Below, in pieces: positions 1-6,142 of a stretch of DNA of 64,000 nucleotides. The DNA lies in sequence record MT679221.1; one strand, 5' to 3'. The position numbers and the translations under genes are program-made. Below the pieces are notes generated by a model, which was not told where the DNA came from, did no database searches, and saw nothing but the letters and a program-made list of their open reading frames with translations. The first letter of the stretch is position 1, and every line of letters begins with the position of its first letter.

Positions 1-93
1 ATAATACCTTTAGGTATTATATTTAATTATTATAATTATTTATATAAATAAATATATTAATATATTAAGATCTTAAAACGCGTGCGCACGCGT
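1..93. repeat. Chain of abutting palindromes, AT-rich then GC-rich (candidate origin or packaging element)
   Basis: ATAATACCT-tt-AGGTATTAT 1-20; TAATTAT-t-ATAATTA 24-38; TATTTATATAAATA 37-50; AATATATTAATATATT 51-66; TTAAGATCTTAA 65-76; ACGCGTGCGCACGCGT 78-93. The palindromes are read directly; the function is inferred. Confidence 0.85.
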
Positions 94-158
94 GCGTGAT
101 CCTTATTAAGAGATCGTGATCGGACGGAAGTCCGAGATTGGGTACCCTGTGTATTTTT

Positions 159-180
159 TACGTGGTTTCCCTATCGTGTG
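159..180 (+). promoter_or_regulatory. Putative nvRNAP (middle-type) promoter TAC-N15-TGTG
   Basis: Matches the YAC-N15-TRTR motif recurring in this window; resembles the phiKZ middle motif AAanntTAC plus the start-site TATG. Confidence 0.55.
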
Positions 181-388
181 TTCAGACCACCACTCGATGT
201 CAAAAACCCATAGCTTCGGTGGTCACCTCCCTGGTCGGTAGACTCTGACAAGTCGACCCACAACACCAACCCGTCCGGGGACGGATTTTTATTCCAACGA
301 CAAGCTCCACGAAAATCCCCGCAGAGGGACTCACTGCTGTGTGACTCACCGGCTCCTGGACGCCTACGCCTCGAGCCGGTAATTTTTT
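180..388 (+). ncRNA. Candidate small non-coding RNA
   Basis: No ORF. Promoter motif upstream. Hairpin CCGTC-CGGG-GACGG plus T tract at 271-290, and ACCGGCTC/GAGCCGGT plus T tract at 348-388. Confidence 0.35.
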
Positions 389-391
389 GAT

Positions 392-413
392 TACGTGAGT
401 TTGTTGTTATATG
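392..413 (+). promoter_or_regulatory. Putative nvRNAP promoter TAC-N15-TATG
   Basis: Exact motif spacing: TAC 392-394, TATG 410-413. Confidence 0.6.
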
Positions 414-990
414 CGAATAGCGATTGACCGCGCCAATGGTCCAATCACTTTTAAACCCTGCACGCTAGGGCTCCAAGTCCTGGGATTGTTACCCAGGACG
501 CTTTTTCGAAAATACCTACCGTGGTGTCTTCGACAAAGCGCAATCTAACACTGCGTGATTTATTATGTTCTGGAAAACTTTCGCCGTGGAACAGAACCGG
601 TGAGCGTCGGCGGGGATTCCGACAATCACCACCCATTCAGGTACTCGGTAAATAACCGACCTGCCGACGGTGCTACGTCGGGCGTAGTTCGGTTTGCGAG
701 AGTGTCGAGAAAGTCGACTGCGCACCCATGACAAAATCCGAGTTGACCGTGGCAGCGCCAGAGGACTGGGCAGCGGAGAGACGTCGTTGAACTTACCTCC
801 GATAGTTATCGCTGATTCCGCTCTGGCGTCGGGCCAAAACTGATTCGAATTCGGCGTTGCGTCGAAAAGGGGTCTGCGTGTAGAACCGCAGACTTGGGGG
901 ATAACTCCAAAGTGGGGTGATCGGATCTTGACGGCTCGGAACAGACGAGAGGGGTGGGTACTCCCGTTGAGAAACGACGGTACCTGGCTG
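413..990 (+). ncRNA. Candidate ~580-nt structured non-coding RNA
   Basis: Lies between two promoter motifs with no credible + strand ORF. Serial hairpins at 477-499, 567-597, 606-623, 850-866 and 872-893. Confidence 0.45.
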
Positions 991-999
991 ATTAAAATT

Positions 1000-1021
1000 T
1001 ACAGATTCTGCGTGAGGTATG
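1000..1021 (+). promoter_or_regulatory. Putative nvRNAP middle promoter (AAAATTTAC-N15-TATG)
   Basis: Full match to the phiKZ-type AAanntTAC with TATG 15 nt downstream; GGAG RBS of the next gene follows. Confidence 0.7.
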
Positions 1022-1045
1022 ATAAACCAAACGGAGAATTAAACC

Positions 1046-1621
1046 ATGAACTTGTATCGCATCGGGTTCTACCGAAACGAGATGCCTGAATCGGTTTTGG
1101 TTGTCTTAGCCGAAAACGAGGAGCAGGCCAAATCCTTCTGGCCGGTTAGCGCAGAGCGTCCAGCGATTGCGTGCTGCTACGACGGCGCTGTGTCTACCCC
1201 GATGGTTACGCCTGGGGTGGTTCTGAAGCAAGGCCGTTGGGATGATTATTCCCATCCCGGTTTGGAATTTGTTTCCGAATCCGCCAGACACACCTGGAAT
1301 CTTACCACGGGTAAAACCAGAGTGTACTTCGGCCACCAAGCCAAGCAACCGTCGCTCATCAAGCTGTACCTGGTTTACAGCGACGTCGCTACCGAAGACT
1401 ATGTCGACGCCGGAATCATCGTCGGGGCAACAACCCCCGAGGCGGCATTCGCACATTGGGACGGTGATAAACCCGGAATCGTTTCGGTCTGTGAGCTGCC
1501 ACTTGAAGCCGGTTTGGTTACGAACATCAAGTGTGAGCAAGGCCAGGAGCTGACTTGGATGCGCCAGGATTACCTGACGGAAACGACATTCGAGTACACA
1601 CCGAGGAAGGTGACCCAATGA
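1046..1621 (+). CDS. Hypothetical protein with two copies of a short phage domain
   Basis: 191 aa ORF with GGAG RBS. MNLYRIG..VVLAENEEQA and KLYLVY..IIVGATTPEAA resemble each other and the 2343-2585 protein. Confidence 0.8.
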   Translation: MNLYRIGFYRNEMPESVLVVLAENEEQAKSFWPVSAERPAIACCYDGAVSTPMVTPGVVLKQGRWDDYSHPGLEFVSESARHTWNLTTGKTRVYFGHQAKQPSLIKLYLVYSDVATEDYVDAGIIVGATTPEAAFAHWDGDKPGIVSVCELPLEAGLVTNIKCEQGQELTWMRQDYLTETTFEYTPRKVTQ

Positions 1622-2109
1622 CGACGATAGCGTTCGATGGAAAAGTCTTGGCTGCTGACGGCCAGCTGACCCGCGGGTCGAATATCTGCAACCTGAATAC
1701 CCAGAAGTTATTCATCTGCCCTTCTGACGAGGAGTGGTGGATTACTGGTGAACGGATTGTGGCGTTCGGAGTAAGCGGTGACATCACAGGACAGTTGGCC
1801 CTGCTGGAAACGGTCCGCTTGAGACCCGGCTACAAGGGATTAACACAAAGCTCGCAGTTACCTGCGAAGATGGATTTTACTTTCCTGATGCTTCTGGCCT
1901 CAGGGAAAGCGATAGTCGGTGGGAAGCGTGAAGACGACGTGTCGTTGTGGTGGAGTGAAGCCACACCACCTCTGGCAACCGGAAGTGGTTACGAGTATGC
2001 GTTGGGTGCGATGAAGATGGGCGCGAATGCGGTTCGTGCTGTTGAGATTGCGTCCGAATGCGATATCTACACCGGTGGTGAGATTAGCACTTACGAACTA
2101 CGGAGGTGA
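1618..2109 (+). CDS. HslV/proteasome-beta-like Ntn-hydrolase (threonine peptidase fold)
   Basis: Start reassigned to ATG 1618 (GAGGAAGG RBS, ATGA overlap). MTTIA..LAADG, a Lys about 30 residues in, ATGSG and DIYTGG match HslV catalytic motifs. Confidence 0.75.
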   Translation: MTTIAFDGKVLAADGQLTRGSNICNLNTQKLFICPSDEEWWITGERIVAFGVSGDITGQLALLETVRLRPGYKGLTQSSQLPAKMDFTFLMLLASGKAIVGGKREDDVSLWWSEATPPLATGSGYEYALGAMKMGANAVRAVEIASECDIYTGGEISTYELRR

Positions 2110-2112
2110 ATC

Positions 2113-2163
2113 ATGCGGGAGTCAGAAGCACGCAAGCTTGACCCCATCAATCGCCTGCGATAA
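2113..2163 (+). CDS. Possible 16-aa peptide MRESEARKLDPINRLR
   Basis: GGAGGT SD 5 nt before the ATG; too short for the ORF track. Confidence 0.3.
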   Translation: MRESEARKLDPINRLR

Positions 2164-2202
2164 CGGGGTAGCGCATCCGTATAAACACGTTTAAAGAATT
2201 CT

Positions 2203-2278
2203 GGGGGTATGGCGCAATTGGTAGCGCACCGGTCTCCAAAACCGAAGGTTCGAGGTTCGAAACCTCGTGCCCCCGCCA
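2203..2278 (+). tRNA. trnW: tRNA-Trp (CCA)
   Basis: 76-nt cloverleaf: GGGGGTA/TGCCCCC acceptor stem, CTCCAAA anticodon loop, TTCGAAA T loop, encoded CCA end. Confidence 0.95.
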
Positions 2279-2342
2279 CATTTAGCCAACGAATTCAGGT
2301 TCAACACAGAAGACACAGATTTGTCAACTGTTGGAGAACAAC

Positions 2343-2585
2343 ATGAATTTGTACTTGCTAGAACGAACTGACGATATCGGGTATGATGAATTTGATTCCA
2401 TAATCGTGGCGGCTCCTACGGAGCAAGCCGCGTGTGCAATTCCTCCCGACCGTGGTTATTGGATGGACTGCCGCTGGTTACCGAAAGAGCGCTGGGATGA
2501 AGGGCTTACCCTGACCGTTACTCTTATCGGCACTACGCACTATCCTGCTGGGACCGTCGTTCATGAATCGTTCAATGCTGGCTAA
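2343..2585 (+). CDS. Small hypothetical protein
   Basis: ATG 2343 with GGAGA RBS; MNLYLLERTDDIGYDEFDSIIVAAPTEQAA. Confidence 0.8.
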   Translation: MNLYLLERTDDIGYDEFDSIIVAAPTEQAACAIPPDRGYWMDCRWLPKERWDEGLTLTVTLIGTTHYPAGTVVHESFNAG

Positions 2586-2587
2586 AC

Positions 2588-2605
2588 AGTGGGCTTCGGC
2601 CCACT
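2588..2605 (+). terminator. UUCG hairpin after the first operon (no U tract)
   Basis: AGTGGGC-TTCG-GCCCACT. Confidence 0.5.
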
Positions 2606-2631
2606 AACCCTATTCGAGCCATGATACTTAC

Positions 2632-2992
2632 TCAGATTGTGCGGGTTGATGTCCCGCATGAGCCGGTAGCAGCTCAGACCTACGGTAAACCGATAAATCC
2701 GTAGCAGCCAGGTACACAAAGCACCAGGTCGCTTGTACAGGATGCTGGGTATCTGACCGGTCATAACCTCATTCGATACGAGACACGTTTATGCATGAAA
2801 TACTCCAGTACATCAGGATGTTGATTTCCAACGTCCGGTTCTGGGTATTCGGTCATGTTTGGTTTACAGGCGATGGGTTTTCCCGTAAGGGCCCCACTTA
2901 CAGACTGGCGTCTCCACGACAACCGTCCCTAGGGGACAGGCAAGCACCGGCCCATTAAGCCGCCATGCTACGCCTGTAAATCCACAATCTGA
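2632..2992 (+). ncRNA. Candidate multi-domain structured ncRNA (domain A)
   Basis: Closing helix TCAGATTGTG 2632-2641 / CACAATCTGA 2983-2992. Inner helix 2863-2872 / 2971-2980. Hairpins at 2680-2704, 2816-2836, 2882-2891 (GTAA loop) and 2925-2937. No ORF. Confidence 0.6.
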
Positions 2993-3250
2993 TAACCGAA
3001 TGGGATTGAGTTCCCAGTGTTAGGGTGACTGTGTGTCACCGTAGGCGCGGTACCTCATACGGCCGGTACGCCACGAATGTACGTGATAGCGGGTGGTGCT
3101 TGGAGACGCTAAGACCTGACCTTACGGCCAGGCTCAGAAGAAGAAGTCCATCGCCTGCATTCAGAAATGAATTTAGGTTAATTATCGGAAGCGGCGAAAT
3201 CGCTTACGTGATAACTTAGTAGTATGCAACGAACAATACCAGAGTGACTT

Positions 3251-3272
3251 TACGAGGTTACTGTGGTATATG
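3251..3272 (+). promoter_or_regulatory. Putative nvRNAP promoter TAC-N15-TATG inside the non-coding island
   Basis: TAC 3251-3253, TATG 3269-3272. Confidence 0.55.
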
Positions 3273-3620
3273 TCGGTGCGCCGGGCAACGTGTTGCCGCA
3301 GATAGGCCCGAGGGAGCTGAGTGCACTAACACACGCCGGGATGCACCGGCACCTTACAATGGGAGCGCTGTCACCATCAGTGATGACAGGAGTGAAGGAT
3401 TCGTACCTCACTCGACTGGGCGGAAGCCTGGGCGTTCCCCCATCTTCACATCATGGCCGGCTTGCCGGTTCAACGTAGACGTCTCGTAAGAGATTTCCAG
3501 TCAGGCAACTGATAACGCACCTAAGCGTCGACCTTGGACGTATGGTGTCTGGTTAAGTCCCCCGAAACGGAAACCAGTAGGGGTGTGGTACGTTGAGTGT
3601 AACTATCATGATGCCATGAA
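3272..3620 (+). ncRNA. Candidate structured ncRNA (domain B)
   Basis: Nested helices 3449-3455/3607-3613 and 3470-3477/3589-3596. GNRA-capped hairpins at 3419-3428 and 3481-3494. Further stems at 3284-3297, 3335-3350, 3390-3413 and 3549-3577. Confidence 0.55.
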
Positions 3621-3624
3621 CAAT

Positions 3625-3694
3625 GGCTTTGTAGCTCAGGTAGGTAGAGCAGCCTCATCGAGGAAGGTCGCCGGTTCGAGACCGGTCAAAGCAA
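3625..3694 (+). ncRNA. tRNA-like element with collapsed anticodon loop
   Basis: Acceptor GCTTTG/CAAAGC, D arm GCTC-AGGTAGGTA-GAGC, T arm GCCGG-TTCGAGA-CCGGT, variable loop AGGTC. Anticodon arm is CCTC-ATC-GAGG (3-nt loop). No CCA. Confidence 0.75.
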
Positions 3695-3770
3695 GAGCAG
3701 CGAAGTTAGAGGAATTAACACCCGACTCATAATCGGATATTTCGACGGTTCGAATCCGTCCGTTTGCTCG
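3695..3770 (+). tRNA. Atypical tRNA with CAT anticodon (elongator Met or Ile2; possibly pseudo-tRNA)
   Basis: CCGA-CTCATAA-TCGG anticodon arm, GACGG-TTCGAAT-CCGTC T arm, GTTA/TAAC D stem. Acceptor stem is 8 bp with a bulge; A in place of U8; no encoded CCA. Confidence 0.65.
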
Positions 3771-4149
3771 CCCTATTTGTGTTATCCTTATCCCGAAGGC
3801 ATTCGAAATAAGACGCGTATCCACACACGGGTCAAGGGTAACACGAACCACTTCCGCGGTCACCGTGTCCATTGCCGCCTACCTGCATGGGCTGTCCTCC
3901 GACACGGTGACTTCGGGCCAACTTACAGGCCAGGGCCGTTTGGGTTTTTCTTACGCATCCATCCAGAGCCACCTCGCGCCCTAGTCTGTATACCCCTTTT
4001 CTGTTCCTGGTTTGCCAACTAAATCAATTAAGCCTGGTGCGTTGCCCTGGGAACAGAAAAACTTATTCGGTTACACACCGAACCCACCCACGAGGGATAT
4101 GTCGTGGACTACCAATAGAAGCAGCAATAGTAGTAAGAAGGAAAGCAAC

Positions 4150-4971
4150 ATGTTTACAGTTAAACGTGTGATTGACGGTGACCGTATTATTACCGAACAT
4201 GAAAAAGTTCGTATCGGTGACCGTAAGTCTCGTGTATTCCGCGAGGCATTAAAAATGCTCGAGAACGAGCGCTTCGACATCGTTGTCGGTGATGAAAAAT
4301 TAGCCCTTAATCCGGGGTTAAAACGCGTTGCCCCTGATGTACCTGATCCGAACACCATGCATTTGTCTGATTATTGTAGCTGGCAGCAGCGCCTGTCTAC
4401 AAGTCAGCTTTATGCTCACGTATATCTAAGGCAGCTTTTCCCCAACCTTATTATCCCCGATTTGGAAACGGTCGAGGTGTTTAACTGCAACGCACGCGAG
4501 TTTGTTAGCTACGTGCTAGATAATAAGGGCAACGCTATCTTGGTACTGGCGACAAATTTATGTGAACCGGAAGCCATGGATAGTATCTGCGGCGAACTTG
4601 TTGGTTTCGGTACGCCCTTAGAAAAATTAGGTTGGTACAAGCCGTCTCCTGATAGCGACATGGCGATTATTGTCTACACTCAGGAAGAACTGCAACAAGT
4701 CGAATTAGAGCCTGGTCCATCTATCGAGTTCACTGATGTCCAGGAGCAATCGCAGTGGGTTAACGGTGAGTGCGTTGTTACTGTTTTAAAAGGCGCTCGC
4801 CCTGGCGACCGGTCAGTCGATGAACTGATTGGCGCAATGTGCATCGAAGAAGAATCTGGGTACGATCCTGATAACCAGATCAGTGCCGGTGCGTTGTACG
4901 AACTGTTTTATAAAGGCGACGAAGTCTACGTGGTTAACTCTCACGGTAAGACTACCGACGTCCTTCGCTGA
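4150..4971 (+). CDS. Hypothetical protein
   Basis: Start reassigned to ATG 4150 (AGAAGGAAAG RBS; MFTVKRVIDG..); 273 aa. Confidence 0.8.
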   Translation: MFTVKRVIDGDRIITEHEKVRIGDRKSRVFREALKMLENERFDIVVGDEKLALNPGLKRVAPDVPDPNTMHLSDYCSWQQRLSTSQLYAHVYLRQLFPNLIIPDLETVEVFNCNAREFVSYVLDNKGNAILVLATNLCEPEAMDSICGELVGFGTPLEKLGWYKPSPDSDMAIIVYTQEELQQVELEPGPSIEFTDVQEQSQWVNGECVVTVLKGARPGDRSVDELIGAMCIEEESGYDPDNQISAGALYELFYKGDEVYVVNSHGKTTDVLR

Positions 4972-5061
4972 ATTAGCTAACGCCCAGTAGCTATGTTCCT
5001 GACGATTAGCCCTCGTCTGACCTTGTAAGACCTTGTAGATTTACATGCCAACACCAGGGAA

Positions 5062-5103
5062 GTCCTCACTCTTCGGAGTGAGGACAACTCTTTTATTTTT
5101 TTT
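5062..5103 (+). terminator. Intrinsic terminator
   Basis: GTCCTCACTC-TTCG-GAGTGAGGAC followed by a T tract. Confidence 0.85.
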
Positions 5104-5120
5104 GTATTCCAAATATTTGC

Positions 5121-5140
5121 AGATAGATATTACCTAAGTG
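5121..5140 (+). promoter_or_regulatory. Putative early (virion RNAP) promoter
   Basis: AGATAGATATTACCTAAGTG; contains the phiKZ early-motif core TATTAC. Confidence 0.7.
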
Positions 5141-5194
5141 AGATGAGAAAGCCTCATCTGAATTCCCCCAACTCGACTATAAAAGGTAAGCATC

Positions 5195-6142
5195 ATGTAC
5201 AGACCAAGTAATCCTAGCGCTATTGAAGGATTAAACCAGGATGGCTTCAGCCTCGCAGAAGCAACCCGCATTCGACCTTTCTTACCTCGCAGATTCTTCC
5301 CTTTCGGTTCGTTATACAGAACGAACTTTGACGCTTGGGAAGCGATACGTGCTGTAAAAGATGCACTACAGTACAAGAACTTCGAATTCCGATTTGTGTT
5401 CAAATGGGGCAACGGCGAATTGCTCCACTACTTCGGATTCCAACAGAACGAGTTTATTGAGTATACCTCACCTACGTACCACACCAAGTTCCTAAGCATT
5501 GAGTTTGTTCGCCATTTCGGCGATGCACTCTTTACGGAACGGGCTACAGATGAAAACCATGGACGTAGACTGATGTTAACGAACGGTGCATTGCGCATCA
5601 AGATGAATCGTTTACGGGAAGCGTATAACCAGCTCATCAATCCTGAACCGGTAATGTTTCCAACGGTGGCAGATATGAATGTAACACCGCTTCAGCTACC
5701 TGTGGATATAGACAAACCAATTCTGGCAATCAGAGCACTGCAGGCAGGTTATGCAAACTGGTATAAAGGGCACAGTCTCCCGAACACCAGATTGAACATC
5801 GAACCGTATGAGTTGTGTTTATTCTTAACTCTACGCAAGCGGTTTGAGCCGAATAACTTAGACTTGCGTTATTTAGCGACTCCTGATGTTGGAACCTATT
5901 ATCCTGCGAATTGGATGGTTGCGGCAGTCCTACCGGACGGCGAGATGGTCGGTAGCATCGTTTATGGGACTCAACAATTACCTTCTCCGTTAGCACCACC
6001 GAAGGATTCTATATATCCGTACGCTTCCTGGTACGTTGGCAGTAACGGAGCTAGATGGTTGGTACTCCACGTCCCTGAGGAAGTTTATAATTTGTTTCCA
6101 CGTGAGCAATGGCTTAGCGTGTACGATTTTCAGTTTGGTTAG
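5195..6142 (+). CDS. Hypothetical protein
   Basis: 315 aa ORF with AAAGGT RBS, flanked by a promoter motif and a terminator. Confidence 0.85.
   Translation: MYRPSNPSAIEGLNQDGFSLAEATRIRPFLPRRFFPFGSLYRTNFDAWEAIRAVKDALQYKNFEFRFVFKWGNGELLHYFGFQQNEFIEYTSPTYHTKFLSIEFVRHFGDALFTERATDENHGRRLMLTNGALRIKMNRLREAYNQLINPEPVMFPTVADMNVTPLQLPVDIDKPILAIRALQAGYANWYKGHSLPNTRLNIEPYELCLFLTLRKRFEPNNLDLRYLATPDVGTYYPANWMVAAVLPDGEMVGSIVYGTQQLPSPLAPPKDSIYPYASWYVGSNGARWLVLHVPEEVYNLFPREQWLSVYDFQFG

Follow-up and report, generated by a model that had tools for sequence, protein, structure and literature searches.

The first kilobase of Proteus phage 7 (P7; sequence record MT679221.1; genus Seoulvirus, species SPN3US) appears to contain the gene of a large structured noncoding RNA (ncRNA) of the SPN3US-like, nucleus-forming jumbo phages, found across the genera Seoulvirus, Erskinevirus, Machinavirus, and Wellingtonvirus. 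In the window—the whole stretch of 64,000 nucleotides (nt) analyzed here, bases 1–3000 of which are 100% identical to the start of the P7 genome—the gene would extend on the + strand from approximately position 180, or from position 413, to position 991. We assign this reading a probability of roughly 0.6. That the element is a functional structured RNA under selection is close to certain, and the best reading of its identity is a new, uncatalogued family of large structured phage RNA, ~580 to 810 nt in length, situated beside transfer RNA (tRNA) genes. An initial annotation of the window, made from the sequence letters, had proposed an untranslated structured RNA with a dedicated promoter at 392–413, bounded by a second promoter near position 1000. 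This proposal survives in outline, with the addition of a conserved promoter and layout, base-pair covariation, and coverage in RNA sequencing; the 392–413 promoter is probably not the sole start, and no terminator is evident at ~991.

Conservation and covariation of the RNA fold

The universally conserved part of the element is a 3' domain of 245 nt (747–991, + strand), closed by a helix of the form CCGY/RCGG. A covariance model of this domain (R1), built from 17 sequences, scores 145–239 bits in every related phage locus and finds one copy per genome; beyond the single hit in the window, the rest of the 242-kb genome yields no match. Standard pairs occupy 98.1% of cells in the 3'-domain alignment, as compared with 88.2% after partner shuffling (0 of 500 shuffles reach the observed value); both sides have changed in 18 of the 41 pairs, and a control in which partners were slid by 1–3 columns retains pairing of only 33–47%. 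Many positions in the domain are G-U in most sequences. Read from the opposite strand, such pairs would become A-C mismatches, and selection is therefore taken to act on the + strand RNA.

Within the domain, a long helix (750–762/822–835) carries inner branches. One of these, a hairpin, retains its AACUUAC loop in all sequences that possess the hairpin. Hairpins at 850–866 and 871–894 follow (the latter with the loop UGUAGAAC), then further hairpins and two 3' hairpins. A near-invariant core of 28–30 nt, AUCUUGNCGGCUCGGRA(N)AGACGAGAGGGG, lies at 925–954 on the + strand (invariant columns in 22 sequences) and includes the invariant hairpin CUCG-GAAAGA-CGAG (935–949). The terminal hairpin (955–986, + strand) has 14 base pairs, an internal loop, and a GNRA tetraloop that reads GAGA here and GUGA, GCGA, or GGGA elsewhere; 9 of its 14 pairs have changed on both sides, and one of them occurs as AU, CG, GC, and GU. 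Three alternative partners are possible for the invariant strand AUCUUGGCGG, as candidate pseudoknots. Two resemblances within the domain were considered and rejected. The likeness of ACGAGAGG in the core to the sarcin-ricin loop of 23S ribosomal RNA involves an 8-mer only, in another predicted structural context, and by reasoning is to be expected by chance; for ACCUCC (797–802) as a mimic of the anti-Shine-Dalgarno sequence, the conserved part is the AACUUAC loop only, and the flanks covary as a stem.

The main ncRNA unit (413–991, + strand) measures 579 nt from G413, in agreement with the ~580 nt of the initial annotation, and would measure 812 nt if started at the upstream promoter. Its fold is also at least as elaborate as the eight hairpins first noticed: the minimum-energy fold of 414–999 contains 11 hairpin loops, with an energy of −221.8 kcal/mol versus −196.6 ± 7.2 kcal/mol in shuffled sequences (z −3.5). 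Folding energy alone does not distinguish the strands of the region.

A conserved 5' junction module (477–643, + strand) precedes the 3' domain. Its first part (477–540, + strand) consists of a hairpin (477–499) followed by the helix GCUUUUUCGA/UCGACAAAGC (500–540) around a small hairpin; it occurs in 13 sequences from four lineages, with 7 of 14 predicted pairs changed on both sides. The closing pair of the 500–540 helix is CG, GC, or UA among lineages, and the small hairpin that it encloses covaries. The stem sequence of hairpin 477–499 is lineage-specific, yet always forms a perfect hairpin. The UUUUU after this hairpin is terminator-like and conserved, but pairs with ACAAAGC in a covarying helix; because its U-run is paired, we regard the hairpin as part of the fold. 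The second part (545–643, + strand) comprises CUAACAC (545–551), UUUAUUAUGUUC (559–570), a hairpin GGUGA...UCACC (599–630) whose stem covaries between Seoulvirus and Erskinevirus, and ACCCAUUCAGGUA (631–643), and the strings CUAACAC, UUUAGUAUGUUC, and UUCAGGU are invariant in the module. A possible pairing of CUAACAC with GUGUUAG at 3017 (nine complementary bases in P7) was dismissed as coincidence, the partner being kept in Seoulvirus only. Between the module and the 3' domain, a variable linker (644–746, + strand) differs in sequence and length even within Seoulvirus. Covariation among homologs had been named at the outset as a check on the proposed RNA, and it is observed, together with G-U pairs, in both the 3' domain and the 5' module.

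The element lies inside a gene-free gap of ~1.75 kb that spans the end of the record and continues to the first gene at window position 1046. The gap is syntenic in Seoulvirus (SPAsTU, pEa_SNUABM_29), Erskinevirus (Asesino, phiEaH2), Machinavirus (ChrisDB, Caitlin, pEa_SNUABM_9, Huxley), and Wellingtonvirus (Kwan, Wellington, pEa_SNUABM_11). Bases 1–3000 of the window are 92–98% identical to about thirty Salmonella and Escherichia SPN3US-like jumbo phages, a group that is related to phiKZ and encodes its own multisubunit RNA polymerases. Noncoding identity within Seoulvirus is 67–72% across the whole gap; in the other genera similarity occurs in blocks, of which window 846–954 is the most widely kept (~80%). 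A layout of promoter, RNA, and next promoter or gene recurs in Seoulvirus, Erskinevirus, and Machinavirus, and the length from promoter to the end of the 3' domain is 548–600 nt in Seoulvirus, Erskinevirus, and most Machinavirus and 414 nt in Huxley-like phages. Searches with the core as an exact pattern recovered 12 loci from the viral collection and 11 metagenome loci (two of the latter are chance matches, and the rest are attributed to such phages on the basis of size or similarity); none of the 185,579 representative genomes of bacteria and archaea contains it.

Only Kwan and Wellington carry a gene for an HNH endonuclease of 169 amino acids (aa) inside the 3' domain (L012:3903–4412), in a region of peripheral hairpins. 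The 5' part of the fold (3664–3827, 33 bits) and its 3' part (4405–4510, 102 bits) are both kept, 577 nt apart, and the domain is uninterrupted in pEa_SNUABM_11, a close relative. A pattern of this kind is seen where homing endonucleases have settled in conserved RNA genes or introns, and free-standing ones also target conserved non-intron DNA. Tolerance of a ~580-nt HNH-bearing insertion fits a modular fold. A weak Rfam match to int-alpA (31 bits; gathering score 35.8; E 0.009) falls at L012:3818–3883 in Erwinia phage Kwan, just upstream of the inserted gene.

Neither proteins nor catalogued RNAs account for the region. The open reading frames (ORFs) of 413–1000 encode 44–58 aa on the + strand and 61 and 72 aa on the − strand. 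Comparison of six-frame peptides with relatives (tblastn) gave similarly weak matches in all frames, at 35–60% identity and with no preferred frame; no frame of 413–1000 is stop-free in all lineages, and its short ORFs have no match in PHROGs or Pfam. The 45-aa ORF at 411–548, which starts in the TATG of the 391–413 promoter, stops after 10–12 codons in Erskinevirus. A protein-coding reading of 413–991 was rejected for want of a preferred, stop-free, or family-matching frame, and the earlier statement that there is nothing to translate between the two promoters stands, in that the ORFs are short and none stays open in relatives. A cmscan search of window 150–1030 against all 4227 families of Rfam 15 returned no match up to E 10. 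Rfam searches of window 1–6000 and of six related loci likewise found nothing on the element, and elsewhere tRNAs and three weak chance matches; the thresholds used in the Rfam work were E 1 and E 10. No description of the element was found in the searchable literature, though it could be listed in a bulk catalogue of motifs from viral RNAs.

Promoters, transcripts, and boundaries

The two TAC-N15-TATG sequences from which the RNA was first proposed are both present on the + strand, at 392–413 and 1000–1021, and are credible members of an enriched, conserved promoter class. The bare seven-base pattern is not enriched in the window (7 matches versus 6.3 expected, with four of the seven in the first 3.3 kb) and was dropped as a statistic in favor of an extended motif; a looser pattern, WWTTTAC-N18-G, likewise showed no enrichment. 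The extended motif, wwTTAC-N15-T[AG]TG, which begins with an AT-rich stretch, occurs 19 times in the 242-kb genome versus 1.3 ± 1.2 times in composition-preserving block shuffles. All but one of these 19 copies (18) lie on the + strand, and gene tables place an annotated gene start ~20–100 nt downstream of most of them; the genes concerned include those for thymidylate kinase, an SbcCD-like nuclease, and a transcriptional regulator.

Comparison of homologous loci places the extended motif at three conserved positions in the ncRNA locus, in several genera. The upstream middle-type promoter, P_a (154–180, + strand), consists of TTTTTTAC, 15 bases, and TGTG, with a predicted start at G180; TTTTTTAC and GTGTG are unchanged between Seoulvirus and Erskinevirus, and a spacer of the same type (TTYCCCAGT) is found in the single promoter that heads the Machinavirus unit. 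The promoter of the initial annotation, P_b (391–413, + strand), consists of TTAC, 15 bases, and TATG, with a predicted start at G413; TTAC and TATATGCGAA are unchanged in Seoulvirus and Erskinevirus, and 390–420 is 88% identical to phiEaH2. The third position (987–1021, + strand) comprises a conserved 3' tail of the RNA, GCUGA, followed by the middle-type promoter P_c (AAAATTTAC, 15 bases, TATG), with a predicted start at G1021. P_c precedes the ATG at 1046, as anticipated for a promoter serving the next gene. In each case (154–180, 391–413, 994–1021), TTAC lies at −22 to −19 relative to the G of T[AG]TG. The unit cannot be taken as strictly delimited by the promoter at 392–413, as had been supposed, given the second conserved promoter at 154–180 and the RNA contigs that begin at 190–193.

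The middle promoters of phiKZ carry the motif AAanTTACc centered near −24, some combined with TATG at the start site (PMC4666361); in 201phi2-1, a tRNA is among the middle-promoter-driven transcripts. P_a, P_b, and P_c match the phiKZ motif, and an equivalence of the two classes is credible on sequence grounds. Both have an AT-rich stretch and TTAC 15 bases before T[AG]TG, both are intergenic and correctly oriented, and both stand upstream of genes of DNA metabolism and of the RNA/tRNA region. They differ in that the present class belongs to another phage genus, is recognized by motif with starts and timing predicted, and has a spacer with its own partial consensus (RNGTTTYCCCAGT in several copies). 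Since a promoter class of the phiKZ middle type is present genome-wide, the phage's own RNA polymerase machinery would be the expected transcriber.

Between P_a and P_b lie two hairpins with U-runs and an invariant element. T1 (271–290, + strand) is terminator-like, and Erskinevirus has a hairpin and T-run of other sequence in the same place. The ACUGCUGUGUG element (333–343, + strand) is unchanged between Seoulvirus and Erskinevirus, and the Machinavirus 5' region holds the similar UUGCUGUGU. The T-run of T2 (349–388, + strand) is also the AT-rich upstream element of P_b; its hairpin and T-run are retained, with a changed stem sequence, in SPAsTU, SNU29, and Erskinevirus.

RNA from the region occurs in four public RNA libraries (X15, X35, X26, and X28). 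Their contigs, placed on window 1–4500, carry no direction and cannot give exact ends. Coverage starts at 193 in X15 and at 190 in X35 (one of these ends is abutted by adapter letters) and is unbroken through 1045 into hslV; X28 (from 149) and X26 (from 284) also cover the region. Positions 66–190 and 3107–3215 are without contig in X15 and X35, which argues against DNA carry-over, and the template-switch oligonucleotide letters present in X28 identify it as complementary DNA. The contig starts at 190 and 193, 10–13 nt past G180, fit the promoter P_a at 154–180. Contig ends in general were not used as evidence of start sites, as their offsets to the predicted starts are inconsistent (+10/+13, −11, −19). 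A joint from 1045 to 1618 in the RNA contigs of all four runs was rejected as evidence of splicing; it is a strain deletion, since SPN3US-type genomes lack the segment in DNA. Nested transcripts are likely, with short RNAs and an ~810-nt form from ~180 and a 579-nt form from 413.

The 3' boundary is indicated by genome rearrangement. SPAsTU and pEa_SNUABM_29 carry extra genes whose insertion point falls exactly between window positions 991 and 993, and the piece 993–1045, containing promoter, leader, and ribosome-binding site, moves with the downstream gene. These insertions imply that the RNA element ends at ~991. In most lineages, the next middle promoter begins a few bases after the 3' domain.

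Function and alternative explanations

As an ncRNA gene, the element would be transcribed in the middle phase together with the neighboring tRNA island. The RNA may form a compact particle in which the invariant core and the loops AACUUAC, UGUAGAAC, and GAAAGA would be contact surfaces, either for self-assembly or for a conserved partner, be it a protein or an RNA, of the phage or of its host. It would act in trans as a stable RNA or ribonucleoprotein, as proposed for the large phage RNAs GOLLD and ROOL, and not as a message; T1 and T2 probably release short RNAs from P_a or attenuate P_a.

Several points weigh against this reading. The trans-acting role is drawn by analogy. The depth of the RNA contigs is flat, and these directionless contigs run into hslV; a discrete, stable species of 580 or 810 nt is something that we infer. 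No terminator was found after the 3' domain (~991). In SNU9 and the Huxley-like phages, a Shine-Dalgarno sequence and start codon stand within ~25 nt of the domain, an arrangement resembling that of a leader. The core hairpin at 935–949 never covaries, and its conservation could therefore reflect a constraint at the DNA level. Finally, the covariance-model alignment leans to the model structure, though plain MAFFT alignments give the same compensatory changes.

Given the read-through and the missing terminator, the main alternative is a cis-acting leader, that is, a long 5' untranslated region (UTR) or attenuator controlling the transcription, stability, or translation of the 191-aa gene at 1046, hslV, and tRNA-Trp. 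In one variant, it might sense a signal or bind a regulator, with the hairpin-plus-U elements as regulated terminators. A leader would agree with contigs that continue from ~190 through the domain into hslV, with the lack of a terminator after 991, and with three hairpin-plus-U elements in series; in 201phi2-1 and phiKZ, early termination is known to yield small RNAs (sRNAs) from 5' UTRs. It would also agree with SNU9 and the Huxley-like phages, in which the conserved tail ACCAAAUUC, AGGAG, and a start codon come right after the domain and the downstream gene family is common to both. Nevertheless, we consider a leader unlikely. The downstream gene varies by lineage (the 191-aa gene, hslV, a 125-aa gene, an unrelated 129-aa gene, or gp292 after the HNH gene), and a separate middle promoter stands between the domain and that gene in most lineages. 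A length of 414–810 nt and a multi-helix domain of 245 nt far exceed known leaders, and no riboswitch or leader family matched the element, even at E 10.

Upstream of both promoters, an AT-rich palindromic block (1–80) is followed by a GC palindrome of alternating purines and pyrimidines (78–98), with GATC at 69, 98, 112, and 118. In the whole 242-kb genome, only one other 40-nt stretch, a T-run in the same gap, has an A+T content of 90% or more; the palindromic block is conserved at 70–73% in Erskinevirus and Wellingtonvirus. Taken with L004:3950–4000, it has GC tracts of alternating purines and pyrimidines, and GATC sites, on its flanks. It is a possible origin or packaging element; a repeated early-promoter type was ruled out, as the block is unique in the genome, and GC skew was uninformative as an origin test, as cumulative skew tracks gene orientation. 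Approximately 35 bases of SPN3US and SPFM4 (AGGATCTTTTAAA... to ...TTAAATAT) are missing in P7 exactly where the linear record was opened (L004:4000/window 1), probably as an artifact of assembly or linearization.

The transcribed element could itself be part of such an origin or packaging site, with the AT-rich block as unwinding element and the tandem promoters activating it by transcription or supplying, as the initial annotation had also suggested, a primer RNA with structure, in the style of ColE1 RNA II or of the T4 and T7 origin transcripts. Transcripts of this kind resemble the present element as structured RNAs of ~550 nt with a dedicated promoter near a candidate origin-like AT-rich element. 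Here the AT-rich block is unique and flanked by alternating GC tracts and a GATC cluster in a phage that encodes a Dam methylase; it is conserved across genera; two promoters within 400 nt of it fire away from it; a DNA ligase gene adjoins the gap; and several independent records begin their numbering at window 62–63. The core is invariant even where an RNA stem would permit change, which suits a combined RNA and DNA constraint. We nonetheless judge an origin or packaging role for the element to be improbable. In contrast to the ColE1 arrangement, the block lies upstream of both promoters and not at the 3' end of the RNA, and the conserved RNA domain is 750–990 nt away from it. What is conserved is RNA pairing: covariation with G-U pairs over more than 300 nt reflects selection on a folded RNA, and Machinavirus keeps the RNA although blastn detected no similarity to the AT-rich block there. 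Cumulative GC skew shows no turning point of its own at the locus. A neighboring origin would leave room for an RNA gene separate from it, and would not account for covariation at the RNA level.

A mobile or catalytic RNA, such as a degenerate or unrecognized self-splicing intron or ribozyme with the HNH endonuclease of Kwan and Wellington as its homing partner, is highly improbable: the idea would stem only from an HNH ORF placed peripherally in a 3' domain whose fold is kept on both sides, and the domain does have GNRA tetraloops, a closing helix, an invariant single-stranded core, and a length of 245 nt, but no Rfam intron or ribozyme matched, even at E 10, no interrupted gene or tRNA flanks the element, the RNA contigs lack splice joints (the two joints seen, at 1045–1618 and 3355–3620, are strain deletions of a kind present in SPN3US DNA), and conserved non-intron DNA is likewise a target of free-standing homing endonucleases.

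Genome context, known RNAs, and significance

On the upstream side of the gap lie a DNA ligase gene and the gene of a 169-aa protein, the last of these ending at record position 241754. The order 3' of the gap is the 191-aa gene, the HslV-family peptidase gene, tRNA-Trp (2203–2278), a small gene, and a second zone that is poor in ORFs and holds tRNA-like genes (3624–3770); full tRNA arrays occur in relatives. The 191-aa gene (1046–1621, + strand), of unknown function, is found in P7, SPLA5c, and the SPFM group, and its product belongs to no family in Pfam or PHROGs. In SPN3US, SEGD1, SaP7, and every strain of the four RNA runs it is precisely missing, and hslV there uses the leader and ribosome-binding site of the absent gene directly. 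Eight DNA runs (X1–X8, with eight organism codes and contigs totaling ~5–7 Mb each, the size of a bacterial genome) contain 84–87% of the words of window 1–3000, which suggests phage carried along in sequenced isolates, whether in a carrier state or as contamination.

A second conserved noncoding block occurs at window 2938–3165, within the ORF-poor zone of 2586–4149. Its long invariant strings, which include GGUGCUUGGAGRCGCUAAGACC and GGCUCAGAAGAAGAAGUCCAUC, are common to Seoulvirus, Erskinevirus, and Machinavirus, just upstream of the tRNA arrays; the deepest RNA contigs are found here, with an adapter-marked RNA end at 3107. The Rfam scan of window 1–6000 gave no match to this block. The block is probably a further structured RNA that has not been catalogued. 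Two further middle-type promoter motifs follow it, at 3205–3226 and 3249–3272; ChrisDB and Huxley share this motif at the equivalent place, and RNA contigs resume at 3215 and 3253. The strain of X26 and X28 is without 264 bases at 3355–3620, and SPN3US-type genomes cover just 84% of 2586–4149, which indicates that the decayed tRNA array is polymorphic. Farther downstream, template-switch oligonucleotide letters abut T4098 of a TATG (4098–4101), 50 nt upstream of the gene at 4150; T4098 probably marks the 5' end of an RNA made from a TATG-type, late-like promoter with no TTAC element at −22. Taken together, the first 4 kb resemble a series of RNA genes, every one of which has a middle promoter to itself.

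To our knowledge, only a handful of RNAs from bacteria or phages exceed 400 nt and have elaborate conserved folds, namely GOLLD, ROOL, OLE, HEARO, and raiA. GOLLD and ROOL were recently found to form cages, and each such large RNA has opened a new line of RNA biology. The jumbo-phage RNA resembles GOLLD and ROOL in being phage-encoded, several hundred nt long, located beside tRNA islands, and of no known function, with an ornate, covarying multi-helix fold; like GOLLD, it combines a universal 3' region with a variable 5' region. It differs from GOLLD, ROOL, and OLE in that it has no match to Rfam models, even at E 10. GOLLD and ROOL belong to phages of Lactobacillales, rumen, and lakes, whereas the present RNA belongs to enterobacterial nucleus-forming jumbo phages and has predicted phage-RNA-polymerase promoters. 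The intergenic and 5'-UTR-derived sRNAs of phiKZ and 201phi2-1 provide another comparison: each has a phage promoter soon followed by a hairpin terminator, and one lies upstream of a tRNA, much as in the unit from P_a to T1 (180–290) and a possible product of 413–505. Those sRNAs, however, are shorter than 250 nt, come from other loci, and are unrelated in sequence, while the jumbo-phage unit continues into the 245-nt domain.

It is possible, and we suggest it only tentatively, that the element is the first of a new class among the large ornate RNAs, confined to enterobacterial nucleus-forming jumbo phages and serving as an RNA machine (a self-assembling particle, a ribozyme-like RNA, or a scaffold RNA, for example) that handles phage tRNAs, ribosomes, or RNA traffic, with the block at 2938–3165 as part of the same RNA island. 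The host phage SPN3US is a genetically tractable model jumbo phage, which makes direct experiments on the RNA feasible. For SPN3US-like phages, a class of middle-type promoters is here defined by comparison for the first time. The opening 4 kb of these genomes, mostly annotated as empty or as "hypothetical proteins," would constitute an RNA-gene island, and the annotations of dozens of deposited genomes would need to be corrected.

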